Shown piece by piece: positions 8,301 to 35,749 of a stretch of DNA of 64,000 nt. The translations under genes were made by a program, and so were the position numbers. Below the pieces are notes generated by a model, which did no database searches, had not been told where the DNA came from, and saw only the letters and a list, made by a program, of their open reading frames with translations. Origin of the DNA: Marsupella aquatica (lineage: Eukaryota > Plantae > Marchantiophyta); contig CCZZQB010000055.1 of the NCBI GenBank assembly GCA_973895155.1, positions 6,115 through 70,114 of the forward strand. Direction: 5' to 3'. Every line of letters begins with the position of its first letter. Position 1 is the stretch's first letter.

Positions 8301-10027
8301 TCAAGGCCGACCTAAGGGAGAAGGACGAGATGCTCGAACAGACTTACGCCAAGATGAACCAGATGGAGTCTGTCATCATTGCAGAGCTCGACAAGGAGCT
8401 AAGAGCAACCCAGGAGGAGAGGGCTACCTTGAAGAAGGAATTGGAGGAAGCCCACAGGGAGCAGGAGGAGGCCAAAAACGAGCTGGAGGGGGCACGTAAG
8501 GACCTGGATGAAACCCAAGAGGAGTTGGAGGAAATCACGAGGAAGATGGAGAACCTACAGCGGCGGGCCGACAACCAAACAGAGCGGCTGAAGAAACAAG
8601 CCGCAGTATTTAAATGCTTAGCTGCAGCAGGTCCATCTCCCGTTGGGACAAACCAGTTACCAGGGGTGGTAATTGCTGAAGGACAAGCCGCGTCAACTGC
8701 ACCAGTGCCGGAAGTAAGTGGGAAGGGGAAGGGACCAGCTGCCGAGCCACCAACGAAGAAGAAGCGGAAACCTCCAGGGTCAAGGAGTAATACGACTTCA
8801 CAGGCCGTGGTGATCAAGGAGGTAGACCCAGCACCGACCCCAGACAGGGTCACGGCTAAGGATCCAACTACCCTAGGGGAAGGGGAGGCCGAAGCCGAGG
8901 GAGTGGCTGAAGCCGAAGCCGTGGGAGTGGCTGAGGCCGAAGCCGTGGGTATTGCCGAGGCCGGTGTCGAGGCTGAAGCCGAAGGTGGACCCAGTCAGGC
9001 CGATGGAGAGTTGACTCGGTCAAGGGCAGGTAATCTGTCAGTAGGCGGGCCAACGGCAGTGGCTGAGGAGGAAGTGTTGGGGGCATCCATTGAGGATCCA
9101 CCACCGGTGTCGTGACGGTGCAAGGGCACCGTTCCTTTTAGGGAAGGCGGACGTGGAGGGAGGAGGCGTGAGTGGGCAGGGCGGGCGCGGATCTCCACGT
9201 TTAGGATTAGGATCAGAACCAGGAGCGGCCCTGACACTTAGCTTAGTGGGATTGCGGTCCCACTGGTAGGAGCAACACTTGTGCTCCTGCCTTGCTGTAC
9301 ATAGGTAGATTCGGGCAAGTAGATTACTGTTAAGTAGATTAGGCTTACGATGCAAAGAATGGCGGATCCACTACCAGGATAAGTACCTGGGCAGCGGGGA
9401 GCTCAGGGCCTCTTCTTTAGCAAGTTTTTAGTTTGCACCAGCCGGGCTGGGATCAAGTAGTACGAGAAGCTCTCGGTTAGTCATACAGTGACCCTTGTGT
9501 ATATTCATGTTTCCTCATGCCTAAGAGCTGAATAGAGTTGGCCTCACGGCTTAGTTCGCAGAACTTGTGTATGAGATGTACTGTTTGTATGGCAAGTGCA
9601 TGGTATGATTCAGTCAGAATGAGTCATTTTGCTATTTGTGTGTCGCATTAACTTGTGTGAAGAGTGCCCACATCAACAGAAGGAAGGAAAGTAAGCAGGG
9701 GAGTGAGAGTTGGATGTGTCGAGCTGAGAGAGGTCTTAGCGGCTTAACCGAGCCTATTGGGGATCATTCCGGCGGCGGAATCCAAACATACCTAACAGGA
9801 AGACAGGGGAAGACAGGGGAAGGCCTATATTAGGTCGGCTACGTATCTCATGACCCGATGAAGGATCTGTCCAGTATATGTGTGTAAAATGTTAATAGTA
9901 GTAGTAGAAGGTTAGCAGCGTCCCATGCCGCTAAGCCGCGGAAACGGCCTCGCCAAGCACGAAACCTGCGGGAATCGGCTTGAGCTGGGGGGTTTCTTGG
10001 GTTTAGGGAGCCATGGGACGCACCACA
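5377..10027 (+). repeat. 3' LTR of element 1 (family A, copy A1, 4651 bp)
   Basis: Begins TGTGATGC and ends GCACCACA; the same boundaries recur at 37328-41908 (-) and 50337-54897 (+), and the 3' end recurs at 59386 (-); preceded by the PPT. Confidence 0.92.
5750..9115 (+). pseudogene. LTR-embedded ORF (about 1120 aa): conserved retroelement accessory domain plus acidic/Pro-rich linker and long coiled coil; one premature TGA at 5999-6001
   Basis: ORFs 5453-6001 and 6074-9115 are in one frame; the stop aligns with an Arg codon (CGG) in copy A3. Contains the LPW...EF...T..YG...LT...I..VFGLP motif. Confidence 0.85.
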
Positions 10028-10689
10028 AACCCGAGCCGAAGATTCTGAGCGTAATTGAAGCATGGTGTCGTCCAGCTTCTTGAGTTCGGCCTGCGCTCCG
10101 CTTAACTCCTGGGTTAGTCCGTCCCTCTGTTCGACAGTGTGGACTAAATCCTCGCGGCGGGTCGTTGCCTCCTCCTCGAGGTGCTCTACCAGCATCTGGA
10201 GACGCCCGATCTCATTCCCCTTCGCCATGAGTTCTTCTTCCAAGCGGCTGACGATCCGTGGTTGGTGCTCTAACATGAAGAAGGCTGGCTGAAAGTACGC
10301 CGAGACTTGTTGTCCGATGTATGTCGCCAACTCCCCAGACATAGTCTGGCTAAACTTCTGGACCAGGTCGTAGGCCATGGTCCCCGGGGCTACTTGGTAG
10401 TCCTCCATCCTCTCGGGTACCGGTGGTTCCTCGGCAGGGGCAATGAGCTCCTCCGTAGTCAGCGCTGGGGAGGGGAAGGTTTCTTCAGGTGGTGGAGGGA
10501 TTGGGGGTGGTTGTACTGCAGGTAGCGGAGGCTCAACGGAAGGAGGTGGTGGAATTTCCACAGGGGGCGGTTGCGGAGTATTAGTCGGGGCTTCCGGCTC
10601 GGGGTTTGTCCGAGGGACAGTAGTCCGCGTAGTCGGGGTTGCCTCCTCTGGGGCGGGGGTGACATTACCCGGGGCTGAGGTGGCCATAT
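10028..10689 (-). pseudogene. Distal part of the LTR-embedded ORF of family B1, cut by element 1 on the left and the DNA transposon on the right
   Basis: Pro-rich linker then coiled coil (MATSAPG...SARV) running into the A1 LTR end; joins in frame to the ORF beyond 24151 when the transposon is removed. Confidence 0.75.
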
Positions 10690-10715
10690 ATCAGCCTATT
10701 CATTAAAAGTGTATT
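10690..10715 (+). repeat. Left terminal inverted repeat ATCAGCCTATTCATTAAAAGTGTATT
   Basis: Exact reverse complement of 24122-24147. Confidence 0.95.
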
Positions 10716-10740
10716 TTCTTTTGTTCACAAATCAGTCCTG

Positions 10741-10830
10741 AAATGTACACTTTTATGTCCCCAAATGTACACTTTAAGAAGCCCAAATGTACACTTTTTG
10801 ATACCTAAATGTACACTTTATAGGCCAAAT
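10741..10830 (+). repeat. Left subterminal repeats (AAATGTACACTTT)
   Basis: About 4 copies; the same motif recurs at the right end. Confidence 0.85.
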
Positions 10831-11078
10831 CTTATTAGTATTATATTAATATATTATCTTATATTAATTATAATAGTATTATATTACTTATTAGTTCACA
10901 AAGAACCATGGGATAGAGATCATACTTGTAAAAACATTTACGCACAAAGAAGCCTAAGCAAGGACCATTGATTGATAATGTGTGAAATAATTATATACAA
11001 TTGTGTCCAAACTTACAATGAATATCCAGGGCTGGCACCCATTTTTACTATCTAATGGGCTTAACATGAGTCAGATCT

Positions 11079-12203
11079 CTAAACAAAGTGCTCCTTACAA
11101 TATTTATTTGAGCACGTGCCCTTGTCTCCTTTACTATCTACCCTAATGTCACGGTTGCAACTCCCTTTATCTTCAGGGAGATGAAATTTGGTGGTGTTGT
11201 TCCTAACTGCTATAATCTCCCGCAAAAAGTGTCTGGGATTTTCTCTATACAGACCTGAATATTCCCGTCCTACAAATGATCTAGCAAGTGAGGTGACAAG
11301 TGCATCGTCAAGTTCCACCTCAGGACGTAAGCTACATATACGGTGCTTCACAGCCCAAGGAATCTCATTGCTATTGAGGTCCAACACACTATGCCTATAC
11401 TGTGACTTCCAAATTTTTGCTGCACATCTCTTACTAAGTTGATCATAAGTAATCTCATTTTTTGCCTTGTCTCTCTTAATGTGCAATAGAGACCACTTTG
11501 GAGAGTTTAGGAGAAGATAACAACGAATGTCACTTGCATGTGACAGTTTCTCAAGACATGGCCAAAGAATTGTTAGAAGAAAATTGTCTCCACGATTGGC
11601 ATGCGTGTAGGGCACTGGAAATAGTCCGGTCATGTCTGGGTTGGCAAATGCCTTTAAGGGGGAGTCATCCACAAGGAGTGTGTTGGTTTCATCATATAGA
11701 TTTCCAAATGCACTCCATACCACCCGAAAATCCTTCAATAGCACATTTGCCTTTCCATTTGTAATGTCACGCCTTTGAATGCCTGTGTCAAAGGCTTCCA
11801 CCTGTGTGAATACAAACTTCAGTTTCAACCGCTCCTCAACAGTGAACATCATGTTCAACATTTTCACTGTCCGCGGCATCCCAGCACATGTCCAAATTGC
11901 AACGTCAAACCGGTCAAAAACCAACTTTAGAAACTCATGGAACCCTGGCCTCTGTGTATACATGCGACTAGTTCCATTTGATCTATCCCAATGCACTCCA
12001 TTTGGGGTCACAATGTTTCTGGATTTGCCCTTGCTTTGGAATTCAAGTGAATCCCAAAGTATTTTGTTAAGATCCAAAATCAGCAACTTCCGCTTGATGG
12101 GACAAGGTCTCGATTCTGCAAGTGCAACAAATACAACTCTTAGAAAGAAAACCAAATTTGAACTTTGGACTGATTTGAATCTCAGTCCAAAAATACAAGA
12201 CAA
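11079..12203 (-). CDS. FCP1/NIF-family HAD phosphatase-like protein (transposon cargo)
   Basis: KLLILDLNKIL (DxDxT-like motif, degenerate), RPGFHEFL, FDVAIWT, TLLVDDSPLKAFANP. The true 5' boundary is probably an acceptor TTGCAG at 12116. Confidence 0.8.
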   Translation of the reverse strand: MSCIFGLRFKSVQSSNLVFFLRVVFVALAESRPCPIKRKLLILDLNKILWDSLEFQSKGKSRNIVTPNGVHWDRSNGTSRMYTQRPGFHEFLKLVFDRFDVAIWTCAGMPRTVKMLNMMFTVEERLKLKFVFTQVEAFDTGIQRRDITNGKANVLLKDFRVVWSAFGNLYDETNTLLVDDSPLKAFANPDMTGLFPVPYTHANRGDNFLLTILWPCLEKLSHASDIRCYLLLNSPKWSLLHIKRDKAKNEITYDQLSKRCAAKIWKSQYRHSVLDLNSNEIPWAVKHRICSLRPEVELDDALVTSLARSFVGREYSGLYRENPRHFLREIIAVRNNTTKFHLPEDKGSCNRDIRVDSKGDKGTCSNKYCKEHFV

Positions 12204-12352
12204 TGACTAACAACAAAGAAAACCTATATACCATTTTTAGAAGCCCCAAAGAGCGTAGGTGGATATCGAGGCTCTAATTGCTGACCGCATTCTGTGAGAC
12301 CGAGAAGTATTTTAGATTGGTATGAAAAAATGGAAAGTCAGACGGTTTGATC

Positions 12353-14728
12353 TCAGTCTGAAAAAAGAGATCCGTATTCATCAATAATGTCAACACCCAG
12401 CTCCTCTTGGATTTCAAAATTGACATCTGAAGTACTTTGTTCTACCCAATAAGGTGACGTCCAAACAGGAGTTATCAATCCCAATTCTCCTCTCTTATAC
12501 TCCTTCCTGTTAAGAATCGATGGAGCAGCATCCAATGAAACTTCTTGGCCTCTATTTGGCCCACTTTTCCACACATAACATCGTGCATCACGTTCAAGTG
12601 ACCTCCATCCGGTTGATCCAACTCTATTCCCTTTTTTCTTTGAGAGAGGAAGGACAACTGGACTTCCCGAGTGTGAACGAACAAAAACCAATTTGTCATC
12701 AGAAGCTGAAAAGAGTGTGTCAGGACAAATTGAAGCACCTGCCTGGTTGTCAACAGTCGCTGATGCACGGGCTTCTGGGGTCATGGGAATCTCACGTACT
12801 TCGACAGCCGTCCCGGGAATCAAATTTTGGGTGTCAGCTTCATTCGAATTGACCTGTCTGTCTCCACCGTCCGCGACCAAATTGGTTGACGAACAATTTT
12901 CAAATGTATCAATGTCAATCGGATCATCAATTCCGTCCATTTCTCGTTGCACCACATTTGGATTGAGACCATCCTTGTCCAAGTTGTCATCAACCTCAAC
13001 TTCATAGGGTTCCAAAGGGACGTCATCTGCACGTGATGAAGGGCGTGGTGCAAGACCAACGTTATCATCAACATCGTAGGGTTCTATGCTTTCACTTTGA
13101 CCTACACGGTCATCCAAATTCTTTGCATACGCCACCTCTGATGCCCCATCATCTTTGACTGACTTAGCGCCCACTTCTTTGGAATTATCAGCTGATTCAT
13201 GTTCGGTAGAAACATCCGCAATAGTGGGTTTCCAATGCCTAGAACTCCCACCACGAGGATCCCAATTTTCCTTGATTGAGGGGACCCTCTCGCAAAGGAA
13301 TGAAGCATACGCTTCCACAAAGTGTCTCTCATCTTGAGAGTCACAATAAACAAAGCATTCGCGTTGCACCAAGAATGCTGTCTTCATCACTTGACCACCC
13401 GAGAAAAAATCAAGAATCAAGTCTCCAGCTTCTGACAAGGATTCAATAATCCTCTGTATCATCCGCGTGGGTTTGGCATGTGGATTCACCCAACCACCAC
13501 GAGCACCAACTATCTCAAATCGAGGGGCCATGTGCAAAACCTTGGTCGCCTCTTCTGGGGTCAGCATCATTTTTAGATCTTCGGGTTTTGACACGTCGTC
13601 TATGTCAACCTTTGCCTTCCCAGTGTCAATCTTGGTGACCTCAAAATCAGTATCTTTTGAACCAAAAAAGAATTTTGGCTTTGGGTGATTGGGTTTGAAA
13701 ACATCATTCCAATTCACATTTTCATCTCGAGAAATTCCTGCAAATATAACTTCTTCAATTCCGCCTCCCCAACACGAATCAAGCGGGTGCGGTTGATCCT
13801 CTCGAGAATAACTCCCATACTCAATGTGAATGGTGAGAGATTTCTCTTGTCCCAATTTTCGAAGTGAGCTTAGGACATTCATTGCAAGAGGCCCCGGATG
13901 AACAGTTATGGCTACAACGATTGTAAGATTTTGTGGTAGCTCCACAATGTATTGCAGAAAGACCAAAACTTCTGCTTCCGTCCACAGCTTCTGGTGATCT
14001 CGACTGAAGTCAACAATGGCAAGTGAGCACGTTGGAGATGATTCTTCTATTGCTGGTGGATCAACTGTTTTCATTAGATTGTCACTAAAGAACGTGACCC
14101 ACGGTTGGCTCCGAGAATGTGTCCCTCCGCCAAACTTCTGGCAATAAATATCATCAAGGCGCATCACCAGAGCTATTGGCAAGATTGCACTCTCCCTGGT
14201 ATGATTTGGCTTCAACAGATTTGACAAAAAAACTTCACCAGCCGCTCTTCTGCATCTACTGAATTCTGCGTCAACACTCAACAATGGCAGAACCTCTACA
14301 ACTTTCTTCCAATCGGTATCCGAAGGGAAATTCCTTGGATCCTTGCCGAAGTAGTACTCCTCAATGAGAGACTTGAGCTTCCTCACTTTTTTCACATCCT
14401 TCGCAAGCTCCTCTATTGAGGGTATGTCAGATTTATTTGTGGCATCTTTCTTCAGCAATGCCTTTCCTGACTTCACTTGTGTCAGGATTTTTGTGATGTC
14501 TTTCTGTGAGATCAACTCACCATCAAAGGGACGAAACATGGCAACGGTAATTGCTTTTTCGGACTTGTTATTTCCTTCCATCCCAGCTCCATCAGGAAGT
14601 TTCCCATGCAACCACATCTCACAGACTAACCGCCACAACTCAAAAAGATCGTTGTCCACAAAAAGTAGCCAGTATACATTTCGCAAGTCCTTCCTGCCCA
14701 TAGTCATTCTTGCCAGAGCCAACCAATC
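12353..14728 (-). CDS. Exon 2 of ParB-like/amino-methyltransferase-like gene: beta-class N4/N6 MTase-like fold plus acidic tail
   Basis: HAKPTRMIQRIIESLSEAGDLILDFFSGG resembles HPTQKP...GDLVLDPFxGSG; upstream SLAIVDFSR sits at the expected DPPY position; acceptor TTGTAG ends at 14729, phase 0. Confidence 0.7.
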   Translation of the reverse strand, partial: DWLALARMTMGRKDLRNVYWLLFVDNDLFELWRLVCEMWLHGKLPDGAGMEGNNKSEKAITVAMFRPFDGELISQKDITKILTQVKSGKALLKKDATNKSDIPSIEELAKDVKKVRKLKSLIEEYYFGKDPRNFPSDTDWKKVVEVLPLLSVDAEFSRCRRAAGEVFLSNLLKPNHTRESAILPIALVMRLDDIYCQKFGGGTHSRSQPWVTFFSDNLMKTVDPPAIEESSPTCSLAIVDFSRDHQKLWTEAEVLVFLQYIVELPQNLTIVVAITVHPGPLAMNVLSSLRKLGQEKSLTIHIEYGSYSREDQPHPLDSCWGGGIEEVIFAGISRDENVNWNDVFKPNHPKPKFFFGSKDTDFEVTKIDTGKAKVDIDDVSKPEDLKMMLTPEEATKVLHMAPRFEIVGARGGWVNPHAKPTRMIQRIIESLSEAGDLILDFFSGGQVMKTAFLVQRECFVYCDSQDERHFVEAYASFLCERVPSIKENWDPRGGSSRHWKPTIADVSTEHESADNSKEVGAKSVKDDGASEVAYAKNLDDRVGQSESIEPYDVDDNVGLAPRPSSRADDVPLEPYEVEVDDNLDKDGLNPNVVQREMDGIDDPIDIDTFENCSSTNLVADGGDRQVNSNEADTQNLIPGTAVEVREIPMTPEARASATVDNQAGASICPDTLFSASDDKLVFVRSHSGSPVVLPLSKKKGNRVGSTGWRSLERDARCYVWKSGPNRGQEVSLDAAPSILNRKEYKRGELGLITPVWTSPYWVEQSTSDVNFEIQEELGVDIIDEYGSLFSD

Positions 14729-14967
14729 CTACAATCCAAAAGGAAAGCTAGTCAGTTATCCCCAACGCAAGGGTTGGAAAAAAAGGATTCTAATGTGTGA
14801 TAATAGTATTGGATTCGGATGGTCTCAATCAAAAAGAAAACTCGTACTAAACATTCCAAAAGTTCCAATACTCTTTGACAAATCGTGTCGGACTGAGACC
14901 ATCCGAATCCAAAATAGAATTACTCTCTATGGTAGAGAAATGCATACAAAGTAATCACATTTCTTAC
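14729..14967 (-). other. Predicted 239-bp GT-AG intron
   Basis: Donor CAG|GTAAGA and acceptor TTGTAG|GAT are both phase 0, giving NQKFQ-DWLALARM in frame. Confidence 0.8.
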
Positions 14968-16575
14968 CTGAAATTTTTGGTTGTCTTGAGCATTTGTTTT
15001 GTTGTCGCCATGTTTTGGTTTGTCTGGATTTCCATATTCAACAAACTGCCGCCTCGCATGGACAACTGTATCTTTAAAGCAAGATTGAAACACCATCGTG
15101 CTATTGATGGCGTTTGATCTCATGGAGTGCTCAACAAGAATTGAAGACGGTGTGCGATCAGACAATATTCTGGATTTCCTGAATTCTAACTTCTTGGCCA
15201 ACTGGGTGAGCTTGGCATCCTTCGTTGCCCAATCACGAATCCATCTCGCAGCTCTCGCAGAGTGCTGACCACTAACGGCTAGAAATTGGACCTCGCCCTT
15301 TTTCACTCCGGCCAAAAAATCCTTCCGGTCCGACTCCGTATTCTCAAAGTGGAGTACCTTTCTTTGCTCGACGTTAAAAGGAATCAAATCAGCGACATGT
15401 GGCTCATGCCCAGGTGTTTTGATCATGGAATCAGCAATGTCTTGCACATGATCAAAATTCATCATCCGATAGCATAGTCTCGCTGGTGCGGCAAAAATAC
15501 TTTCAACTGGGATCAGAAAAATTTCGTTTATCCCAAAAGTATAGTACTGCTCCATTTGTTGAAGAACTTCATTCCCTTCTAAGACGTCTTTCTCCTCTGG
15601 AGCATGTGGCCTATCACTCTCATCTTCAGCATGTAATGAAAAATCTATAGGAGTTGAATTCACAACTCCGGTGTCGGTTTTTTGTTTCTTCTTCTCCCTC
15701 GACTTCTTCTCGGCTGGAAGCTTCTTCTTCTCGGCTGGAAGCTTCTTCTTCTCGGCTGGAGCCGTGATCTTCTTCTCAACTGAAGTAGGTTTCTCAACCA
15801 GAAGCTTCTTCTCCCTCTGCTTTCGCTTCCCTGCCGCTCTATCCATGGTTGTTGTTGCAGTAGTTTGTGCTGTCTCCGTCGTAGTTGCTGGAGTTCCTTT
15901 GGCTGGCGTAGACTCAATTATTTTCTGTGGTTGTGTACTTTTCCTCAACTTCACCAAAGACTCTACCCATAGATTTGCTTTTTCCAGGTCAAGCGTGTGT
16001 GCAAAGGCTAGTGCCTTGGCGATCCAAACATTTGAGTCTGGTGACACCAGACCTGCTTTCTCAAGCAAATTGTTAAGAGTCCATGTGGATGGAAGAGAGA
16101 ACTTTGATGGGTTGTTTACAATGTTGAGTTTCAAATAAAGAAACCCATAAAAAATGTCCAAAGGAAGCATTCCCTTCAGTCCTCCAATAATCTTCTCCTT
16201 TGTGTAGGATTTTGGAAAGAATCCCATCGACAACACACTTAATTCCCCACTTGCATACCATTCCACATTGAACTCGGCCGAGAAAGCCTTTGTGGGGAGC
16301 TGCAACTTTGCCCACCTCATCGTGTCCGACACCTCTACAATGATAGAATTCATTCCTCTTCCTATCATTCCCACAGAGACCACGGGTCCGATGACCAATG
16401 TTTGGTTGTTGCCTGTCCTGATCTTGACACATAACACTGGATCCTGAATGTTAAATGAATTCAGGCGGAAGTTAACTCGCGAGAACTCAAGTCCCCACCG
16501 AAATCCTGGATCGCGGTCCTCCAAAATGAGCCCATCGTCGCAGTCTGCCTCTGAAATGGCGAGAGTTGTATTCAC
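14968..16575 (-). CDS. Exon 1 of cargo gene: unknown N-terminal domain, Lys-rich linker and ParB/Srx-like domain
   Basis: IPVESI...RMMNFDHVQDIADSM...FLAVSGQHSARAA resembles the ParB/Srx core ending in (D/S)G(Q/x)H(R/S); 21-bp repeats encode AEKKKLP. Confidence 0.65.
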
Positions 16576-16673
16576 CAGATCACTCTCTGCATTGGAGAGT
16601 GAAAATTCATATTAGACTTCAAATCCATGAAATTTGTTTTAAGAAATCACTGTCAAAGTGAGATTGAAGGCTC

Positions 16674-17340
16674 TTGGATTCGGACCATCCGAATCCAATA
16701 CAAGAAGCCCACTTGGATTCAGATGGTCCGAATCCAAACAACCCTCTTAGATTCGGACCATCTGAATCCAATCAAGCCACTTGGATTTGGACCATCCAAA
16801 TCCAAACAACCCACTTGGATTCGGATGGTCCGAATCCAAACAACCCTCTTGGATTCAGACCATCCGAATCCAATCAAGCCACTTGGATTCGGACCATCCA
16901 AATCCAAACAACCCACTTGGATTCGGATGGTCCGAATCCAAACAACCCTCTTGGATTTGGATGGTCCGAATTTAAACAACCCTCTTAGATTCAGACCATC
17001 CGAATCCAAACAACCGACTTGGATTCGGATGGTCCGAATCCAAACAACGCTCTTGGATTTGGACCATCCAAATCCAAACAACCCACTTGGATTCGGATGG
17101 TCCGAGGTTGTTTGGATTCGGATGGTCCGAATCCAAACAACGCTCTTGGATTTGGACCATCCAAATCCAAACAACCCACTTGGATTCGGATGGTCCGAAT
17201 CCAAACAACCCTCTTGGATTTGGATGGTCCGAATTTAAACAACCCTCTTAGATTCAGACCATCCGAATCCAAACAACCCACTTGGATTCGGATGGTCCGA
17301 ATCCAAACAACGCTCTTGGATTCGGACCATCCGAATCCAA
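16674..17340. repeat. Left palindrome array: about 34-bp units (TTGGATTCGGA-CCA/TGG-TCCGAATCCAA plus about 9 bp), 102-bp higher-order period
   Basis: Read directly; frame translations repeat every 34 aa. Confidence 0.92.
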
Positions 17341-17794
17341 CAACTTAAGATGCATGAATAAACCTCCGGGAACTTACTTTGGACTTGAGATTGAAATTCT
17401 TGGGAATCCCTAAGCGCTAGGGCCACAAGATCACCGACAGAGGAGAGATCCAAGTCATCAGATTCTTCGGCGAGTAGGACGATGACGGTTTTCTTGGAAA
17501 CTTCCATTTTTAGGAGTGACACGTGGCAGGATATACTGAGGACACGTCAAGATGGGCAAGATCTAGGGCGTTGCAGCAGATTAGGGCAAGAAGGCAATTA
17601 GGGCAAGGGCAAGGGATATCAGCGGCAGCCAGCCAAGAGCGAGAGCGAGGAGCGAGAATGAGGAGCTAGAGCGAGAGCGAGGAGCGAGAGGGAGGAGCGA
17701 GAGTGAGGAGCGACAGAGAGAAAACAACAATGAGGTCTGTGGAAGACCTCATCCTCCCTTTACCCCCTCCTGAAAGGCTTGTTTGCGTACGGAT

Positions 17795-17852
17795 GATCGC
17801 TGCACGGATCATCTCTGTACGGATCATCTCTGTACGGATCATCTCTGTACGG
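17795..17852 (+). repeat. 15-bp tandem repeat CGGATCATCTCTGTA x3
   Basis: Direct reading. Confidence 0.85.
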
Positions 17853-18502
17853 ATAGAGACCAAGAAGGGATCTGGTCCTATCAGTTTGGGTGGGACGCTA
17901 GCTGTATTGTCTGACACAATGGATTGAAAAAGGATTGGATGATTGTTCTAACCGCGATACTCGGTGTTGCCTCAACCTTATCGGATCGCACATTCAGGGC
18001 CGAACATACCAACCCACGAGTATAAGAGGTACTCTACGGACATCATTGTTGTTTTAGTTTCATATCTTCACTTGGGCATCCAGGTCTGCGCAACTCCTCC
18101 TCAGCTCTTCTCTCTGATGGAGTTTAGACTTGAAGTGGCTTTGATAGCTTTCTTAGTCAGATTGATATGAACTTATTCATCAATTTAGAGGTAGCAGAGC
18201 CAACCTTGGAGACATACTGGAAAAACAAGACTGCTGAGGTGAGTTATGGTCTTAGTCGCTTTGCTTATTTTGAGTTCTTAGGGAAGAGAGACGAACCCTT
18301 TCACTTTGTTCTGCATTCTAGTGACTTCCCAATTATTATTTCACGAATTACCCAATGTTCCGAAAAACCCGGAATGTCTAAATTTGATTAGGAAGAGATC
18401 TCAATCTCAATATATCCATCTCAACATAATCTTCATTGTGGAGTTAGACCATTTGAATCCAGACTTGATGTGTGGATTATAATGGTCCTAATCCTAGATT
18501 GT

Positions 18503-19633
18503 TGTTTGGATTCGGATGATCCAAATCCAATCCATTTCTAGGATTGGGACCATCTGATCAGATTCCAATCTTGGTTTGGATTCGGATGGTCCGAATCCAA
18601 GAGGGTGTGTTGGTCCGAATCCAACCGTGCAATGCTTAAATTGTGACCTTTGGGATCCAATCTCGGTTTGGATTCGGACCATCCCAATCCAAGCGAGATG
18701 GTAAATACAGTCTGGTTTTTGATTTGGATGGTCCGAATCCAAGAGGGTGTGTTGGATTCAGACCATCCGAATCCAAGCGTGCAATGCTTAAATTGTGGCC
18801 TTTGGGATCCAATCTCGGTTTGGATTCGGACCATCCCAATCCAAGCAAGATGGTTGAATTTGGGCGTTTTAAATACAGTCTGGTTTTGGATTCGGATGGT
18901 CCTAATCCAAGAGGGTGTGTTGGATTCGGACCATCCGAATCCAAGCGTGCAATGCTTAAATTGTGACCTTTGGGATCCAATCTCAGTTTGGATTCGGACC
19001 ATCCCAATCCAAGCGAGATGGTTGAATTTGGGCGTTTTAAATACAGTCTGGTTTTGGATTCAGATGGTCCGAATCCAAGAGGGTGTGTTGGATTCGGACC
19101 ATCCGAATCCAAGCGTGCAATGCTTAAATTGTGACCTTTGGGATCCAATCTCAGTTTGGATTCGGACCATCCCAATCCAAGCGAGATGGTTGAATTTGGG
19201 CGTTTGAAATACAGTCTGGTTTTGGATTCGGACCATCCCAATCCAAGCCGGTTTGTTGAATTGGGACCTTCGGGATAGAATCTGTGTTTGGATTCGGACC
19301 ATCCGAATCCAAGATGGTGGGTTGGATTCGGACCTTTGAAATACAATCTGGTTTTGGATTCGGACCATCCGAATCCAAGCCCGGTGCTCAAATTGGGACC
19401 TTTGAAATAAAATCTGGGTTTGGATTCGGACCATCCCAATCCAAGCGCGTTTGTTGAATTGGGACCTTTGGGATCCCATCTGGGTTTGGATTCGGACCAT
19501 CCAAATCCAAGAGGGTGTGTTGGATAGAGGTTGGTTTGGATTCGGACGATCCCAATTCAAGCGAGATGCTTAAATTTGACCTTCGGAATAAAATCTTCAT
19601 GGTTTTGATTTGGACCACCGGCCCCAATCCAAG
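18503..19633. repeat. Right palindrome array: same 25-bp palindrome, 168-bp higher-order unit in its core
   Basis: GATGGTCCGAATCCAAGAGGGTGTG-like block recurs near 18724, 18892 and 19060; frame translations repeat every 56 aa. Confidence 0.9.
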
Positions 19634-19747
19634 CGTGATAGTTGAGCCAATGTTTGGATTCTCGGAATGGCAATCAAATGACCGTATGGATAATTGTGAG
19701 TCTCTTCAAATTCTTGTCATTCGGATTTGTGATGGTTTTTCTGAAAA

Positions 19748-22700
19748 TTGTGCAGGTTACTAAATCCGAGAATGACTGGAAGGTTTTCAAGAGGTGATGA
19801 TGTGACCTTGACAATTGATGGATATGATGTCGGTTGTGGGACAGTTCAGAAAATTAACCCCCAGGATAGGGTGCACAACATATTGTTGGGGGATAATCGA
19901 ATTGGTGTGCTCGTGGAGAAGGTTTTCGAGCCAACTCGAAAACTACCATTTCCACTACCAAGGGTAGAAAATCTTTTTGATGCCATTGACTCATGTGTTA
20001 TTTGGGAGATCTCGTGCGCGTATCTCTCTATAACTCTAGATTCCCAAAAACGCATCAGTACTGGTAGTTGTTCAACTCGACCAGATAATAACTTGGATAA
20101 ATCTCCTACAATTGTTATGGAGGATGCATCAAACACTCTAAGGCAAGGGGACGAGGTTGAAATGCTCATTGATGGGTGTTGTGTAGCCCTTGGAGTTATT
20201 TTCAAGGTAAATCCAAAGGACCGATGTCACAACATATTACTTGGTGAGTCTCGGATCAGTGTGAAAATCACTGATGTTATTCATGGTAGTAAGGCTTTAC
20301 CTTACATACACAATGGGGCTGAAACAATTGAAGAGGCAAAAGACTCATGGGTTCTCTGGGACTTGGCCGATGTTCATAAAAAAGGTTGGAATGTTGATGA
20401 AGGTAGAAAGTCTTCCTCTAAGAAGCAAGGTGATGGCGACGTTTTAATTGAGGAGAGTTTTGTCTCACATTCTCCATCAACAAAATCGACCAAAACTCAT
20501 TCTGATTATTACCAACGGTCCAATTGGATGTCAGAGTTGGTCGAATTATACATTGGTTCAGGACGATCGAGTAAGGTTGCCACTGGGACTATCACTGTGC
20601 CTCAAGCAACGGCGGCTGTTGATGATGAAATCCTGGGAGAAGACTATGTAGGGGTTGCTGTGAAAGATGTCATGGAATCGCAATACTTTCCAAGCATTCA
20701 CAAGGGAGTAATTAGTTTGGTTCGATGGCGAATTGATCACACAAAACTAGTAGCAACTGGAAAATTTTTGTCAGACATTCTGGTAGAAGGTACAGAGAAT
20801 ATGGAGTCAATGGATAGGGATGATCTGAATCCGGATCATGTGGTTGGATCCGCATCCGGATGTCGTCAAAGGCCATATAACTTCAACAAGAGGAATCAAG
20901 TTGATCCTGTTGAGAAGAAAAGGAGGCTCTTGCAAACCAAGGCAGTTTCAAAAACAACAGAAGCCGCAATTGATGAGATCAAAAGAGTAAATTGCTGCAA
21001 GCATAAATGTTGTCTCATTATGCCAAGGGAAGATATAGAAGATGTTAGGATGGAATTTCACGGGATGTCTAGCGAGTCCAAAACATCACACATTTTCAAC
21101 CTCTTCCACTACAGAGAGGATGATGTTCGTGATAAGGGACACCATGTTCTCAAAGGTATGGTCATCTGTAAAGATGCATTTGCAACCATCCATGGTTTTA
21201 GTCACACCAAGTATTATGATTACAAGAGAAGATACATGGAGGGTTGCAAAATTGGGTTCCATGGGAACACAGGCTTGAAGAAAACAAGGTCAAATACCTT
21301 GCATGTGCGAGCTCTTCTAGAGGCATTTCTGACTCAAAATGCAGAGCCAATGCCTCATATGCCTTATGGAGGGGCTCATGGGACAAACAGCATTGAGTAT
21401 CGACTTCCAGCGTGTTACAAAAAGTTAGAGATTTTGGAAGATGTGAGAACAAAGATGAAGGAAGAAGGGCTTCCTCCTGTTACGGATAACACTCTCTACA
21501 AGATATGGAGCACATCATTTGCAAACTTCAGTTTTCACAAGGATGGCGCATTTGCCAAGTGTACGCTTTGTTGTGAATACAAAGACAGTTTGATGCGAGA
21601 GAGAAGGAAAAAAGAACGTGCTGAAATTGAAGAAAAAAGAGCTCAACATCTTCGTGAGCAAATGTCACGTAGATATGTTTACTACGCTCATCGAGTGATG
21701 GCCAAGCAACATCCAAGAGAATATCTTTGCATTATTCATGACAAGATGGATCAAGCAAAGACATGGATTCCAAAAATGGTTAGTACTCCTAAATCACTTT
21801 CGGGTCATGGAATGCCGCTACCTATCGCTCTCACGGGGATGTTGACCCACGGGAGAGATCCAGGAGTATATGCACACTTTAGTGTCACTGGCCTTTGGCC
21901 AGGAGATGCAGATTTCACAGTGACATCCTTGGCTAAGTGTCTTCGAGATCTTGAAGAGTACAATGGAGACAAGACAGGTGACATGCTTGATGGCTTGCAT
22001 TGGGAACCTCACAGACCTTTCTTTCAAGCCCTACTTGACTTTGATGCATTTTTGTCAGGATATTTGGAACCAAAGAATATTCAAGTAAATAGGTATATTG
22101 GTTCTGAAGATGGAGCTGCCGACAGTCAGACTGAGACCATCCCAACCCGACAGGATGAGGATGATGGAGGGGACGTGGGTGGTGAGAAGGGCAGTCCGTT
22201 GTTCATGCCCTTGCCAAGGCACCTAACATTGCAAATGGATAATTCAGCAAAGGACAACAAAAACCAAACGGTCATGGCATTTTGCTCGGAGCTTGTGAGT
22301 AGAGGAATATTTGAAACTGTTCAAATGTCCTTTCTAATGGTTGGTCATACGCACGAAGATGTTGATGCACTATTTTCCAAGGTATCATATCAAGTTCAGC
22401 ACAAGGAAGTTGCAACCCTTCTTGCACTAATGGCAGAGGTTTGGGAATGTGAGAGCATTCATCCAGTTCCAAGATTGATACAAGAAGTTGCATCTTACAA
22501 AGAATATCTTCAAAGTTTTAAGGTCAAAGATATTCAAGGTCACTCAAAACCGGTATCATTTCTTTTCTCTATGAGAGATAATGTACCAATATTTCAGTAT
22601 AAGTCCCATGTTAAGCAAGCTTGGGCTCCCGTTGGCGGAAGGTGCATTTGGGCAACTGATCCAATAACAAATTCTCTTCTTTTACCCAGTGGACAACCCT

Positions 22701-23563
22701 TAGCTAAATCCATAGGAGAGATACACAAAAAATCAGAAGAGATAATCCCATTCCTTAACAAGTACCTTGATTTTTTGAGAAGGAGTTGCATTGATGAGAC
22801 GTCAATAGCATACAAGGAAAGATTTCCTCTTGTTAAATATTGGGAAAGAATTGTGGAGCTGTTGTCAAATGGGCTTGCAATGGAAGGGGAGGGAAATAAT
22901 CAATTTCCATTGAAAAATGGATTTTGGCCTAAGACTAACCACAGCACTGGTTACAAGGTCAACCAATCGGCATGCGAACAGAGTGGTCCTCTAAGTGAAG
23001 ATGAGGAGAATGCAGAGATGACAGCTCTTCAAAATGAAGTCTTGGAAGAGATGGAAGATCAAGCAGCACCATTTGTTGGATCTCGAGCTGAGAGAGAACA
23101 AGGACAGTGGATTCCCCTCCAGGATATTTGTGAAGGAAACTTTGTGTTTCTTCGACCCGAGGATGATTGGGAGAAGAAAAATGGTGGAGGTCATTTCTGG
23201 TTGGTGAGAGCTTTGGGTCAGGTGGACCCTAAGCATGAAGTCCCAATTGCATCTTCAAGAGACCCTCCTTTGACTCAACAATATGCTCCAATGTTCCCCA
23301 TGGAATGGTGGAGGCCTAAACACTCTAAACTTGATGTGAGTGAGAGTGCTAGGTATCTCAATTGTTTCATGTCCACCAAGACATGGGAACGAGATCCAGG
23401 ATTTGGTGAGAACACTCAACATTGGCAGTATGCAAATTCTGCAATGTATGGTTTTAAATCTGGAATGAAGGAAGAAAACATGGTTGGCAGAGGTTTGAAG
23501 ATTCCTCGAAATGTTCTACAAACTGTCCAAAGTTATCTCCAAAGGATGGACAAGTACACTTAG
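19748..23563 (+). CDS. Sola-type DDE transposase with three N-terminal Tnp1/En-Spm-like repeats (first ATG at 19772)
   Basis: CCKHKC; FAKCTLC; catalytic-region motifs IIHDKMDQ, LQMDNSAKDNKN and FLMVGHTHEDVD; 1271 codons without a stop; lies inside the TIRs. Confidence 0.85.
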   Translation: MCRLLNPRMTGRFSRGDDVTLTIDGYDVGCGTVQKINPQDRVHNILLGDNRIGVLVEKVFEPTRKLPFPLPRVENLFDAIDSCVIWEISCAYLSITLDSQKRISTGSCSTRPDNNLDKSPTIVMEDASNTLRQGDEVEMLIDGCCVALGVIFKVNPKDRCHNILLGESRISVKITDVIHGSKALPYIHNGAETIEEAKDSWVLWDLADVHKKGWNVDEGRKSSSKKQGDGDVLIEESFVSHSPSTKSTKTHSDYYQRSNWMSELVELYIGSGRSSKVATGTITVPQATAAVDDEILGEDYVGVAVKDVMESQYFPSIHKGVISLVRWRIDHTKLVATGKFLSDILVEGTENMESMDRDDLNPDHVVGSASGCRQRPYNFNKRNQVDPVEKKRRLLQTKAVSKTTEAAIDEIKRVNCCKHKCCLIMPREDIEDVRMEFHGMSSESKTSHIFNLFHYREDDVRDKGHHVLKGMVICKDAFATIHGFSHTKYYDYKRRYMEGCKIGFHGNTGLKKTRSNTLHVRALLEAFLTQNAEPMPHMPYGGAHGTNSIEYRLPACYKKLEILEDVRTKMKEEGLPPVTDNTLYKIWSTSFANFSFHKDGAFAKCTLCCEYKDSLMRERRKKERAEIEEKRAQHLREQMSRRYVYYAHRVMAKQHPREYLCIIHDKMDQAKTWIPKMVSTPKSLSGHGMPLPIALTGMLTHGRDPGVYAHFSVTGLWPGDADFTVTSLAKCLRDLEEYNGDKTGDMLDGLHWEPHRPFFQALLDFDAFLSGYLEPKNIQVNRYIGSEDGAADSQTETIPTRQDEDDGGDVGGEKGSPLFMPLPRHLTLQMDNSAKDNKNQTVMAFCSELVSRGIFETVQMSFLMVGHTHEDVDALFSKVSYQVQHKEVATLLALMAEVWECESIHPVPRLIQEVASYKEYLQSFKVKDIQGHSKPVSFLFSMRDNVPIFQYKSHVKQAWAPVGGRCIWATDPITNSLLLPSGQPLAKSIGEIHKKSEEIIPFLNKYLDFLRRSCIDETSIAYKERFPLVKYWERIVELLSNGLAMEGEGNNQFPLKNGFWPKTNHSTGYKVNQSACEQSGPLSEDEENAEMTALQNEVLEEMEDQAAPFVGSRAEREQGQWIPLQDICEGNFVFLRPEDDWEKKNGGGHFWLVRALGQVDPKHEVPIASSRDPPLTQQYAPMFPMEWWRPKHSKLDVSESARYLNCFMSTKTWERDPGFGENTQHWQYANSAMYGFKSGMKEENMVGRGLKIPRNVLQTVQSYLQRMDKYT

Positions 23564-23784
23564 TTGTCACTAGCTAAGATATAATTAGATAGTTACTAGT
23601 TTTTATGTAAGAGTTATATATATTGTGAGACCATGCCATTGAGTGTTTAGTTACTTAGTAGACTATCTACTCATTTTCTAAACTTTTGATTATTATGAAT
23701 ATGAATGTTTATTTTTTCTGCATAATTAAAAATATTTTTTATTAATTTCTTTATTTTAAATGATTACAATAAAAGTTTTCAGGA

Positions 23785-24110
23785 AAATGTACACTTTTTA
23801 GGCCAAATGTACTCTTTATTGCACTCAAAGCTACACTTTCTAGACTAAATGCACTGAAATGTACACTTTTTAAGCCAAATGTATCTTTTTTTCACTCAAA
23901 TGTACACTTTCTAGGCCAAATGTACTAAAATGTACACTTTTTAAGCCAAATGTACATATTTGGATGCTCAAATGTACACTTTTCATTGCCCAAATATACA
24001 CTCTTTAGACCAATTGTACACTTTTTTATCCCCAAATGTACACTTTTCATTGGTCAAATGTACACTTTTCCAAGCCCAAAAGTACACTTTTCATTGCCCA
24101 AATGTACATA
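23785..24110 (+). repeat. Right subterminal repeats (AAATGTACACTTT)
   Basis: About 10 imperfect copies in the same orientation as the left-end copies. Confidence 0.85.
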
Positions 24111-24121
24111 AATCAAATAAT

Positions 24122-24147
24122 AATACACTTTTAATGAATAGGCTGAT
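24122..24147 (-). repeat. Right terminal inverted repeat
   Basis: AATACACTTTTAATGAATAGGCTGAT. Confidence 0.95.
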
Positions 24148-24151
24148 ATAT

Positions 24152-25607
24152 TCTTTCCTCTGGCCTCCCGCCGTGCCTTGTACCAGGCGAGGATAATGGC
24201 GATATGACTCCCCAAGTAAGTCTTCCCTCCAATAGCCATACCACCCTGAGCCCGCTTCAGCTCCCCCGAGAATCTTCGGTAGAAGAATTGGGCCTAGTTT
24301 CGTCGTTTGTACTGTTCCACCTGCACTATCGTGCAGAGGGAAATCTCGGATCGTGGCTCAATCATGTGTAGGGTAGTCCGTATGAAGTTAAGCCGCTCCA
24401 TACAGGTTAAGTTGGTGCACGCCCCCTGCTTGTATCCGTTGTCCGTCTTACCCTCGGGTTTGAAGTGCCGCGGCGTATACTCCTTATCCCGAATTCGGAT
24501 TTCCACCGGCACCGGCCCGGTTGGTAGGCCAAAAATTTGCGTTAACCGATGCTCCGTGAGTGATAAGGTCTGCCCCGAAACCTTGGTGGTTGACGCATCA
24601 GTGTCGAAATTGGAGATGAACTTACAAATCTCCTTCGGCCCGGCGGCGCACGGCCTCCATAGTAGGTGGGCGAACCGCTCCAACTGATGCTCCTTGAGAT
24701 AGTCCGCATGTTCGAGTTTCTTGATCGCGATCCAGACTACCTCGGGGACGCGGATTACCTGTAATAAGTTGGACTTCGGGTTATCCGGGGGCCGTCGGGT
24801 CTGGTTGGTCGGGGGGTTTGCCGGGGCAGGTGCAGGCGCGGCGTCGGTCCGTGTTGATTCGGGGGCCGTCGTAGTCCTTGACCGCTTACGAGGATGCTGT
24901 TCGAGTTGCGGACTAGCTCGCTCGAAACCCGAAGAACACTCCGCGTTGATTACTGGACGGACTTGGGACTGGTTTGGCGGTACTCCGGTGGTCATCGGTT
25001 GAGGCGCTGGGGTAGCCATATCCCAGTTGAAGGCGTTGGAGCTTTCCCCGAGGAACGTGAGATTACGCGCCGCTTCCCGTTGTCTGCTGATGTCTTCTTG
25101 GCACTTTTCGGCTGCGATCTGCTGGTCTAGGTACCCCGGGATCTTGTCGAACTCCGCTTGAGTAAGCCGCTGGTTGCCCTTCAGCTTAAAGAACTTAGCT
25201 GGAACCTCAAGAATCGCCTCTACTACCGATCTAAGCCCTTCCTCGCTGAGATATAGTTCGGTGATGTAGTCTCGCAGCTCGTTATAGCTAGAATCCCTGG
25301 TGATGGCTGTCCTTTCGCAATTAACCAGTGCTACCTTGGTTACCAGCTTCGCGTACCTTCGTTCGTAAGCGGCTTTCTCGGGGCAAGAGTACCAGTAAGT
25401 CTCGGAGAACTTAGCACCTACCTCGCCAAACAAGGTCCAAAATCCCAAGGCTGTGAGGGTCATACTAACCTCGTAGTCCAGTTCGTTGCGTCCACGTTCC
25501 CACCTGGCTGGTCCTTTTTCGCGGAGGCCTCGCTCGTCCTGACTAAATCTTGCCACATTCCGCTCTTCTCCCTCGATAATTTCCTCGTAAAGGTCGACTG
25601 GATTCAA
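24152..25607 (-). pseudogene. LTR-embedded ORF of family B1 (proximal part; in-frame TAG at 24294-24296)
   Basis: FAHLLW...KFISNFD...LTQIFGLP...NGYKQGAC...FIRTTLHMIEPRSEI is homologous to the A and B ORFs; continues as GGKTYLGSHIAIIL. Confidence 0.75.
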
Positions 25608-35716: not shown

Positions 35717-35749
35717 CTCCCTCAGTTGCCGTTTGTACTCTGGATTGTT

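Follow-up and report, generated by a model that had tools for sequence, protein, structure and literature searches.

A Sola1-type transposon of the liverwort Marsupella aquatica with a conserved ParB/methyltransferase-like accessory module and arrays of a lineage-specific palindrome

Why should a DNA transposon carry, besides its transposase gene, two arrays of a palindrome and a set of genes resembling ParB, a DNA methyltransferase (MTase) and a phosphatase acting on the C-terminal domain (CTD) of RNA polymerase II? This question was raised by an element residing at positions 10690-24147 (13,458 bp) of a 64-kb stretch of DNA from the liverwort Marsupella aquatica (GenBank assembly GCA_973895155.1, contig CCZZQB010000055.1, positions 6,115 to 70,114 of the forward strand), the whole of which is referred to as the window. 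An initial annotation had described it as a Sola-like transposon possessing a self-recognition, anti-silencing or self-marking system. Our best reading, to which we assign a probability of about 0.5, is that the element represents an old liverwort Sola1 lineage equipped with a self-recognition and transcription-control module, similar to ParB/parS of prokaryotes or to the VANC proteins of Arabidopsis VANDAL transposons. The anatomy of the element, the conservation of its package, the predicted folds of the proteins and their motif losses are results of the analysis; DNA binding and an effect on chromatin we infer.

Ends and family of the element

The outer limits were defined by the 25-mer TCAGCCTATTCATTAAAAGTGTATT, which occurred exactly twice in the window, at 10691-10715 on the plus strand and at 24122-24146 on the minus strand (0 occurrences expected by chance). 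Inclusion of the preceding A yielded perfect terminal inverted repeats (TIRs) of 26 bp, ATCAGCCTATTCATTAAAAGTGTATT on the left (10690-10715, +) and its inverted copy on the right (24122-24147, -). The TIRs are bordered by ATAT on either side (10686-10689 and 24148-24151), the target site duplication (TSD). Judged by the window alone, a 2-bp TA duplication combined with a 27-bp TIR fits equally well. The duplication was settled at 4 bp by a relative from Calypogeia fissa (locus L003; element at 2514-16254, 13,741 bp), because its perfect 24-bp TIR, ATCACAGTATTCATTAAAACTGGA, starts with ATCA and AGAG sits on each flank. An element of the liverwort Riccia sorocarpa terminates with ...TTTTAATGAATACTCTGAT. 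Since the ends of the window, Calypogeia and Riccia elements have it in common, the terminus ATCA(N3-4)TATTCATTAAAA is conserved across liverwort classes. The 13.5-kb transposon with perfect 26-bp TIRs was thus confirmed with the very boundaries given in the initial annotation, as was the ATAT duplication.

In silico excision of the element together with one TSD copy generated an open frame of 349 aa on the minus strand, which spans the junction. This restored host frame had been regarded as proof of the boundaries. We consider it only a weak corroboration, because it extends merely 70 aa past the junction into a flank without Pfam match, which is anonymous DNA within nested Ty3/gypsy retrotransposon debris. 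No empty-site paralogue of the insertion site was detected within the window; repetition of the left flank extends no further than approximately position 10032, and nothing crosses the junction. As all frames are open and the TIRs perfect, the copy is probably young and its insertion recent.

Inside the TIRs, four copies of AAATGTACACTTT with a period of 22 bp are located at the left end (10741-10819, +), and ten similar copies in the same orientation at the right end (23785-24090, +). All of these subterminal copies have one orientation (0.05 expected by chance), by which the element obtains a polarity. The repeat has TACACTTTT in common with the inner TIR portion and shows no resemblance to the palindrome described below. 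Because of this similarity to the inner TIR, it suggests itself as a candidate site for binding by the transposase. Subterminal repeats with a 22-bp period were also found in the Calypogeia element and in the Riccia loci L001 and L005.

The transposase gene resides within an open reading frame (ORF) at 19748-23563 on the plus strand. Starting with the first ATG (19772), the coding sequence (19772-23563) specifies 1,263 aa, comprising three DUF8039-like repeats, a Cys-rich region and a DDE/D core, which matches Pfam DUF7869 (E 2.8e-43). The intact DDE transposase noticed initially was hence verified. Its N-terminus is composed of three repeats of a small domain; DUF8039 was called in homologues, while the window protein itself gave only a weak match to TNP1/En/Spm. 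Fifty-nine homologues were detectable, the named ones of which belong to R. sorocarpa, where dozens of paralogues occur (31-57% identity); more distant relatives exist in amphioxus and sea urchin. In the alignment of plant and animal proteins, the blocks I.D.MDQ.K, LP..L..Q.DN...(D/E)NKN and FL.VGHTHED.D are invariant. The corresponding motifs of the window protein are KMDQAK, QMDNSAKDNKN and VGHTHEDVD.

The Sola superfamily reportedly goes back to Bao and co-workers in 2009. The respective core sequences read FDLEK / YSDNCGGQNRN / ERGHTQS in Sola1-1_AP, DFAEN / TDGCAGQYKN / ATSHG in Sola2-1_HM and KDYCQ / SDNASSYHGN / CRGKD in Sola3-1_HM (Majorek et al. 2014, supplement). By this motif-level comparison of the core blocks, the window transposase fits the pattern of Sola1 and not that of Sola2 or Sola3. 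Sola transposons are known to produce 4-bp TSDs, are mostly 2-9 kb (some >15 kb) in size and have been found in a moss and thus in bryophytes (PMC10741241). The assignment to Sola, made initially on the basis of the DN..NKN and GHTHEDVD motifs and the TSD, can therefore be narrowed down: motifs and TSD length identify the element as a Sola1-type autonomous cut-and-paste DNA transposon, and we are highly confident of both the anatomy and this family assignment. Sola1, which Majorek et al. (2014) placed in their RNase H-like group E.10, and the window element have TIRs, a 4-bp TSD and the DDE/D blocks D(L/M)(E/Q), DN-x4-N(K/R)N and GHT in common. The window element differs by the three plant-type DUF8039-like repeats at the N-terminus of its transposase and by a conserved two-gene accessory module with palindrome arrays, which is unreported for Sola in the literature searched.

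Accessory genes and their conservation

On the minus strand, three uninterrupted frames of 551, 789 and 374 codons were identified at 14920-16575 (ParB-like), 12353-14722 (MTase-like) and 11079-12203 (similar to NIF/FCP1 phosphatases of the HAD type). The ParB-like ORF runs into a splice donor (...AAA TTT CAG|GTAAGA), and ahead of the MTase-like ORF the sequence reads ...TTTGGATTGTAG|GAT TGG TTG, containing the acceptor TTGTAG|GAT. With the predicted 239-nt GT..AG intron (14729-14967, -) removed, the two frames continue into each other precisely (...NQKFQ|DWLALARMTMG). An identical splice position is found in the annotated Calypogeia protein P0063 (KFQ|DYQVLAKITLNM), and unspliced predictions of homologues all stop just past (F/Y)(Q/E/N)V, whose V reflects the GT of the donor. 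On account of the canonical in-frame intron and of the identical splicing of P0063, the ParB-like and MTase-like parts are predicted to constitute one spliced fusion gene encoding approximately 1,330 aa, and the cargo consists of two genes.

The ParB-like exon (14968-16586, -) codes for a beta-barrel/helical domain at the N-terminus, followed by a basic linker and a ParB/sulfiredoxin-fold domain with the conserved sequence ISGQHSAxAA. It starts at an acceptor-like CAATGCAG|AG; such a site, CCAATGCAG|AG, was noted at 16587 and Calypogeia contains an acceptor-like site at the equivalent place. The last exon (12353-14728, -) covers, at about aa 200-480 of its ORF, a beta-class DNA-MTase fold, followed by an acidic linker and a conserved C-terminal domain ending with DEYGS. 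In several relatives the MTase-like protein likewise ends with DE(Y/F)GS, the NIF-like protein being encoded by a separate gene. Intact cargo genes on the minus strand had been reported before. All frames are indeed open, but there are two genes instead of three, and the intactness of the fusion gene is not fully established, because its 5′ exon and start codon were not found.

The main exon of the NIF-like gene (11079-12138, -) carries the Pfam NIF match. From reading the sequence we propose a candidate first coding exon, ATG GTA TAT AG (12224-12234, -), whose ATG lies at 12234 and from which an 85-nt GT..AG intron (12139-12223) leads into the ORF with the frame restored, a plausible model. 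Splicing of ATG|GTATAT to the acceptor CAG|AATCG was rejected as this joint is out of frame; an in-frame joint results when AG|GTTTTC serves as donor and CTAAG|A as acceptor. Contigs from Logan and ENA that contain homologues look genomic or unspliced, the predicted proteins continuing into the intron. The public annotation of R. sorocarpa fuses MTase-like and NIF-like regions to a 999-aa 'FCP1 homology domain-containing protein' (P0131; KAL3690045.1, R1sor_016354), reflecting either alternative splicing in Riccia or a faulty gene model.

The ParB-like domain was recognised by its fold. An AlphaFold (AF2) model built on 11 family members reached a predicted local distance difference test (pLDDT) value of 65 overall and of 80-93 over residues ~340-480. 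Its Foldseek matches in the PDB were almost exclusively members of the ParB/sulfiredoxin superfamily, namely sulfiredoxin, Noc, ParB, PadC, KorB and SbnI (probability 0.8-0.99, with 0.9-0.99 in the top ranks, E 0.04-0.3, target TM score ~0.5). All 11 members possess an (I/V)SGQHSAxAA box at the position of GERRxRAA of ParB, a correspondence that was established by eye.

The MTase-like domain matched Pfam N6_N4_Mtase (PF01555) with E 8e-6 and 26.4 bits, the gathering cut-off being 26.7, and the match was confined to the region of motif I. Likewise, the family profile matched M.RsrI (E 7e-5) at motif I only. The AF2 model (pLDDT 79) identified by Foldseek CcrM (E 2e-8), MboIIA, RsrI, M.BceJIV, M1.HpyAVI, PvuII and the rotifer N4CMT (8s9o). 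These alignments span ~240-320 columns and thus whole beta-class enzymes, in which motif IV precedes motif I. A profile search of 1.84 billion representatives retrieved only 179 proteins, the named ones of which all belong to Riccia. The catalytic motif IV, (D/N/S)PP(Y/F/W/H), was present in 0/29 family proteins (17 full-length and 12 partial). At its position the Asp alone is invariant (DFSR, DFTR, DFAR, DLLR, DLVR, DTTS, DLTH etc.), while the canonical multi-domain methylase P0200, which served as a control within the same match list, contains DPPF three times. Motif I, DFFSGG(Q/V), and an xPxxKP segment are conserved, with the last Gly of FxGxG replaced; the acidic residue of motif II is kept in the closest clade only and lost in distant members. 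To judge from these residues, the MTase fold has been kept but canonical amino-methyl transfer is very unlikely. A kinship with DN4MT1 of Marchantia was considered and dropped, as the weak Riccia match P0072 turned out to belong to the same DFFSGG family lacking motif IV and gave no link.

The NIF-like protein clearly exceeded the Pfam cut-off (56.9 versus 21.8 bits, E 2.6e-15), its matches to TIGR02245 (E 2e-15) and to a dullard-like domain (E 3e-7) being under the NCBIfam cut-offs. It is 52% identical to the Calypogeia copy. Instead of DxDxT, motif I reads DLNKI in the window and Calypogeia and DIEGL/DVEGL in Riccia; hence the nucleophilic Asp is kept and the general-acid Asp at +2 lost. The Thr of motif II, the Lys of motif III and DD(S/N)P of motif IV are present, as determined by eye. 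The ParB-like, MTase-like and CTD-phosphatase-like character ascribed to the cargo thus held true at the level of fold or Pfam match. Judged from the domain architecture rather than from a phylogeny, the ParB-MTase module probably descends from a prokaryotic or phage ParB-methylase fusion.

To see whether the cargo co-occurs in other species, loci of relatives were compared by tblastn with the window proteins. In the Riccia loci L001 and L007 and in the Calypogeia locus L003, the NIF-like, MTase-like and ParB-like regions follow each other in this order on one strand, with the transposase on the other. The Riccia loci L004 and L005 show the same arrangement, although there the locus stops short of the NIF position or the NIF gene is too divergent to be detected. 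Including the window, the order is identical in 6/6 cargo-bearing elements from two liverwort classes, and the transposases of the five relatives are only ~35-55% identical to that of the window. In the Calypogeia copy (CBCUJL010000008.1), stop codons interrupt the frames of the MTase-like and NIF-like parts (10847-13048 and ~14650); it is a decaying copy, otherwise complete with 13.7 kb. Another Riccia locus, L006 (CM100796.1), harbors two transposase genes head to head (3260-5306, -, and 9617-13070, +) without ParB/MTase-like cargo and without palindrome arrays, and represents a rearranged locus or, alternatively, a sublineage devoid of cargo.

Since synonymous sites are saturated at ~50% amino-acid identity, identities by codon position were used instead of the ratio of nonsynonymous to synonymous substitution (dN/dS). 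Between the window and Calypogeia, the values for positions 1, 2 and 3 were 0.65, 0.72 and 0.44 for the transposase, 0.64, 0.72 and 0.42 for the NIF-like gene, 0.56, 0.64 and 0.34 for the MTase-like and 0.59, 0.70 and 0.35 for the ParB-like part. As third positions (0.34-0.44) are far less alike than second positions (0.64-0.72), the cargo appears to be under constraint at the protein level, and all four coding regions show a pattern indicative of purifying selection, the cargo being constrained like the transposase. The cargo is therefore an old, selected part of the liverwort Sola1 family.

The converse, a one-off functionless capture (Pack-type cargo) beside satellite-like repeats, is effectively refuted: large DNA transposons often acquire gene fragments, and the stops in the Calypogeia NIF-like and MTase-like ORFs would suit such an event, yet one gene order in all six elements from two liverwort classes with transposases this divergent, the purifying codon pattern, the open ORFs of the window and the conserved splice site speak against it.

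Palindromes and their possible readers

The palindrome TTGGATTCGGA-NNN-TCCGAATCCAA was found at 38 sites in the window when up to three mismatches were allowed (0 expected), none of them outside the element. Nineteen sites of the type TTGGATTCGGA-(CCA/TGG)-TCCGAATCCAA form array 1 (16674-17340) with a period of 34 bp and 18 sites form array 2 (18506-19560), which is organized in higher-order units of 66/168 bp. Two arrays of a 25-bp palindrome between the divergent genes, as reported initially, are therefore real and restricted to the element. They enclose a central spacer (17341-18505), which may contain a bidirectional promoter and first exons. GA/CT-rich repeats resembling (GAGCGA)n occur in the middle of the divergent region of both the window (17618-17733) and L003 (7772-7868 and 8300-8505); these may be promoter or 5′-untranslated-region elements. 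The remaining site (14809) lies in the intron of the fusion gene (palindrome copies 14809-14833 and 14886-14912), the second, more degenerate copy being disclosed by the repeat search only. Degenerate palindrome-like sequences were also seen within the coding regions of the MTase-like part (12956-12982) and of the transposase (22125-22148). They are 75-88% identical to copies that are themselves divergent and may be chance matches or eroded sites.

Each cargo-bearing relative has its own variant of the palindrome: GCCTCGAGAC(C/G)GTCTCGAGGC in Calypogeia, GCTTCGGGACGCGTCCCGAAGC and derivatives thereof in the Riccia loci L001 and L005, and a version with 19-nt arms, CTGGCGGAAAAGTAAGGAC-N5-GTCCTTACTTTTCCGCCAG, in L004 and L007. 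All variants share a centre similar to (G)GAC-Nx-GTC(C) and range in length from 20 to 45 bp. Besides the intron between the ParB-like and MTase-like exons, they occupy, in the relatives, the divergent 5′ region, further non-coding stretches and the surroundings of the NIF gene. The intron contained palindromes wherever this could be checked (L003 10661-10754, L001 4589-4805, L004 1284-1483 and window 14809-14912). In Riccia L001 (11827-11931) and L004 (10803-11993), palindromes were additionally seen in gaps between high-scoring segment pairs (HSPs) of the transposase, which are probably introns of a gene that is intronless in the window. No recurring palindrome was detected in the cargo-less loci L006 of Riccia and L008 of amphioxus. 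Thus, six loci possess both cargo and palindromes and two possess neither, with 0 discordant cases, a co-occurrence that is suggestive only.

We propose the following mechanism. The transposase would bind to the TIRs and the subterminal repeats and mobilise the element. The ParB/MTase-like protein would no longer methylate but bind to, or clamp, the palindromes of its own element in a sequence-specific manner, like ParB and KorB at parS and OB, and thereby mark cognate copies. Its CTD-phosphatase-like partner would tie this recognition to RNA polymerase II or to the control of the element's chromatin, with either auto-activation or anti-silencing, comparable to the action of VANC, as the possible outcome. 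The specificity would drift between sublineages, as the differing palindromes show. A second cis element calls for a reader of its own, because the palindrome differs from the transposase-type repeat, is lineage-specific and travels with the cargo. The fusion protein is proposed for this task as it contains the sole cargo fold that comes from a family loading on palindromes (ParB, KorB, Noc). This self-recognition mechanism is put forward tentatively, at less than even odds. More doubtful is the full evolutionary scenario, in which a ParB-methylase fusion of prokaryote or phage type would have been converted, throughout the lineage, into a self-recognition device of parS-like and non-catalytic nature that, with a pseudo-CTD-phosphatase, couples the recognition of self to the control of RNA polymerase II or of chromatin. 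Of the functions suggested initially, the VANC analogy gained support from the own palindrome variant in every cargo-bearing relative, and self-marking by methylation lost it. That the cargo might be a single acquisition or evolve neutrally, named at the outset as outcomes that would speak against such a system, is contradicted by the gene order common to six elements and by the codon pattern.

Several points weigh against our reading. The ParB call depends on a model of medium confidence (pLDDT 65, Foldseek E 0.04-0.3), and ParB was not detected by any sequence profile (Pfam with E up to 5, NCBIfam, and phmmer and profile searches of the PDB). The GERR motif of ParB for binding of cytidine triphosphate (CTP) is replaced by GQHS, so that the CTP-contacting arginines are gone, and neither a helix-turn-helix nor another DNA-reading domain was demonstrated in the cargo. 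An in-frame ATG upstream of the conserved N-terminus of the fusion protein was looked for in the window and in Calypogeia, and none was present. That cargo and palindromes occur together is based on eight loci, which are mutually related, and is to be taken as suggestive. Membership in Sola1 was derived from motifs and not from a phylogeny with Repbase sequences. Moreover, non-canonical catalysis by the MTase-like or the HAD-like domain is conceivable, and the palindromes could be read by the N-terminal repeats of the transposase or act as RNA hairpins.

Among the alternatives, reading of the palindromes by the transposase survived best, but we think it unlikely. According to it, the DUF8039-like or Cys-rich N-terminus would recognise the palindromes for auto-activation and the cargo would act elsewhere, for instance on RNA polymerase II or silencing factors of the host. 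Transposases can be sequence-specific activators of their own copies, the TnpA protein of Spm being transposase-derived (bioRxiv 10.64898/2026.08.24.746577), and both the weak TNP1/En/Spm match of the window N-terminus and the position of the arrays in the divergent 5′ region of both genes are compatible with this idea. It is opposed by the AAATGTACACTTT repeat, which is akin to the inner TIR and already suits the role of a transposase site, by locus L006, which has kept transposase genes without palindromes, and by the occurrence of the relatives' palindromes in the cargo intron and around the NIF gene as well.

The cargo might instead serve the mechanics of transposition. A ParB-like clamp on parS-like arrays would bring about pairing or condensation of the 13-kb element, keep its excised DNA attached to chromosomes until it is reintegrated, or aid repair or target choice, with the HAD-like protein controlling these steps through dephosphorylation. 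Loading at palindromes and the bridging or condensing of DNA are properties of ParB, KorB and Noc; the fold matches include such proteins (PDB 6sdk, 8qa9 and 7ol9), and the element is unusually long for Sola. We regard this possibility as improbable. A Pfam scan revealed no ParA-like ATPase among the ORFs of the element, the CTP-binding arginines are absent, and the arrays are internal and promoter-proximal rather than terminal.

Low in our ranking, too, is active self-marking, in which the MTase-like domain would be a working DNA or RNA methyltransferase with an unusual active site and, directed to the palindromes by the ParB-like domain, would methylate the element itself (N6-methyladenine, 6mA, or N4-methylcytosine, 4mC) to evade or modulate silencing by the host. 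Bacterial ParB-MTase fusions are active enzymes, liverworts make use of 4mC introduced by beta-class enzymes (MpDN4MT1), and the protein has retained the whole-domain beta-class fold, a well conserved DFFSGG loop and xPxxKP segment and, in the closest clade, an acidic residue at the position of motif II. Yet that residue is gone in distant members, and the Pfam score, due to motif I only, stays just below the gathering cut-off. Self-methylation is unlikely above all because motif IV is absent from the whole family: it is missing in all 29 proteins, in which only the Asp is invariant at this position, and present three times as DPPF in the control.

Still less credit was given to the assumption that the arrays act as RNA. 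Hairpins of ~25 bp in 5′ introns would yield small RNAs or sequester the machinery processing double-stranded RNA, the palindromy of the DNA being incidental. Within array 1 (16810-16945) the spacers alternate between CCA and TGG, so neighbouring units are exact reverse complements of each other with 25-bp stems (-49 kcal/mol, z = -14). In the window and in Calypogeia the arrays lie directly upstream of the acceptor-like sites. If they are intronic, as these sites suggest, they would be RNA hairpins too, with stems long enough for Dicer. In L001 and L005, however, the variants (GCTTCGGGACGCGTCCCGAAGC) are short, perfectly palindromic and variably spaced, and long stems between their units are not obvious. 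An Rfam scan of the element gave no match, and a transposon would defeat itself by a hairpin that triggers small interfering RNAs, although the hairpin is conserved.

Known systems and genomic surroundings

A functional parallel is offered by VANC. This protein of VANDAL transposons is accompanied by motifs tandemly amplified in the elements' own non-coding regions, and these motifs are lineage-specific (PMC5735166, PMC10398659). Similarly to the Mutator-like VANDAL elements of Arabidopsis, the liverwort element combines an accessory protein with short non-coding repeats that differ between related elements. It belongs, however, to another transposon superfamily and employs ParB/MTase-like and HAD-like proteins together with long palindromes; the resemblance would thus be one of analogy. 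Binding and hypomethylation have been demonstrated for VANC (PMC5735166, PMC10398659), whereas for the liverwort element they are inferred.

With the ParB-parS, KorB-OB and Noc-NBS systems and with the ParB/N6_N4-methylase fusions of mobile elements, the cargo shares a ParB/Srx fold N-terminal to a beta-class MTase on one polypeptide. As in the systems of bacteria, plasmids and phages, clustered palindromic sites are found on the same replicon or element. Differences concern the eukaryotic host, the introns, GQHS in place of GERR, the absence of a ParA partner among the ORFs of the element and the loss of motif IV.

KDZ/Plavaka transposons are associated with TET/JBP genes. Sola2 transposons carrying Fanzor1 have been described (PMC3627910), and the statement of the initial annotation that known Sola elements are mainly transposase-only was consequently too strong. 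DIRS1 retrotransposons contain an inactive N6A-MTase domain, and a review on the acquisition of N6A-methylases by eukaryotes names chlorophytes, chytrids and haptophytes as recipients of ParB-linked transfers, the liverwort case not being among them (PMC4738411). DIRS1, KDZ/Plavaka and Sola2-Fanzor1 are precedents for cargo of the nucleic-acid-modification type, including catalytically dead forms; the liverwort element differs from them by ParB, beta-class MTase and HAD folds, by its lineage and by cognate cis repeats. MpDN4MT1a/b of Marchantia and the rotifer N4CMT (beta-class, 4mC) represent the same structural class of MTases in eukaryotes. Unlike the transposon family, which lacks the motif, they are host genes with TSPPY/SPPY, and a close sequence link was not found.

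In the literature searched, no Sola or other eukaryotic transposon family was encountered that unites a fusion of ParB-like and MTase-like domains with a NIF-like gene and arrays of a cognate palindrome, in agreement with the earlier claim that such a system is undescribed for Sola. Sola itself, its 4-bp TSD, its occurrence in bryophytes and the cargo of Sola2 are known; the conserved accessory and putative self-recognition module in Sola1 is new.

Self-recognition of transposons and their escape from silencing are known in detail for few systems, chiefly VANC of VANDAL and TnpA of Spm. The element described here adds a compact, conserved and sequence-defined candidate from an early-diverging lineage of land plants. 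Both its protein parts, which comprise two pseudo-enzyme-like domains of seemingly prokaryotic type and the CTD-phosphatase-like protein, and its cis parts are defined to the base and amenable to direct testing in transformable liverworts. A Sola1 family with obligate cargo has been documented and its gene models refined, which public annotations merge or split, and a match to 'N6_N4 methylase-like' in liverwort genomes need not signify a methyltransferase. If the full evolutionary scenario is true, the family would represent the first ParB/parS-type system at work in the nucleus of a eukaryote. It would also be the second case, after VANC and of independent origin, of an anti-silencing device of this kind, with a specificity that evolves in concert with the target. 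A genuine ParB-like clamp would extend the ParB/parS logic to eukaryotic chromatin and could furnish programmable DNA-targeting modules.

The whole window has the appearance of nested transposon debris without a recognisable host gene. Ty3/gypsy-type gag-pol ORFs (zf-CCHC, RVT_1, RNase H and integrase) were detected at 167-5388 (+) and 32202-36640 (-), the minus-strand copy being split over several frames. A repeat of ~1 kb is present four times (9000-10032, 59379-60413, 53917-54897 and 37327-38280; 99%, 86% and 86-90% identity) and ends ~650 bp before the insertion site; it probably corresponds to long terminal repeats or to another repeat family. Long ORFs of 437-1013 aa without Pfam match are situated at 6074-9115 (+), 24294-25607 (-), 44345-45892 (-), 51792-54032 (+) and 61545-63401 (-), and may encode proteins of uncharacterised transposons. 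The Sola element lies between the first two of them.

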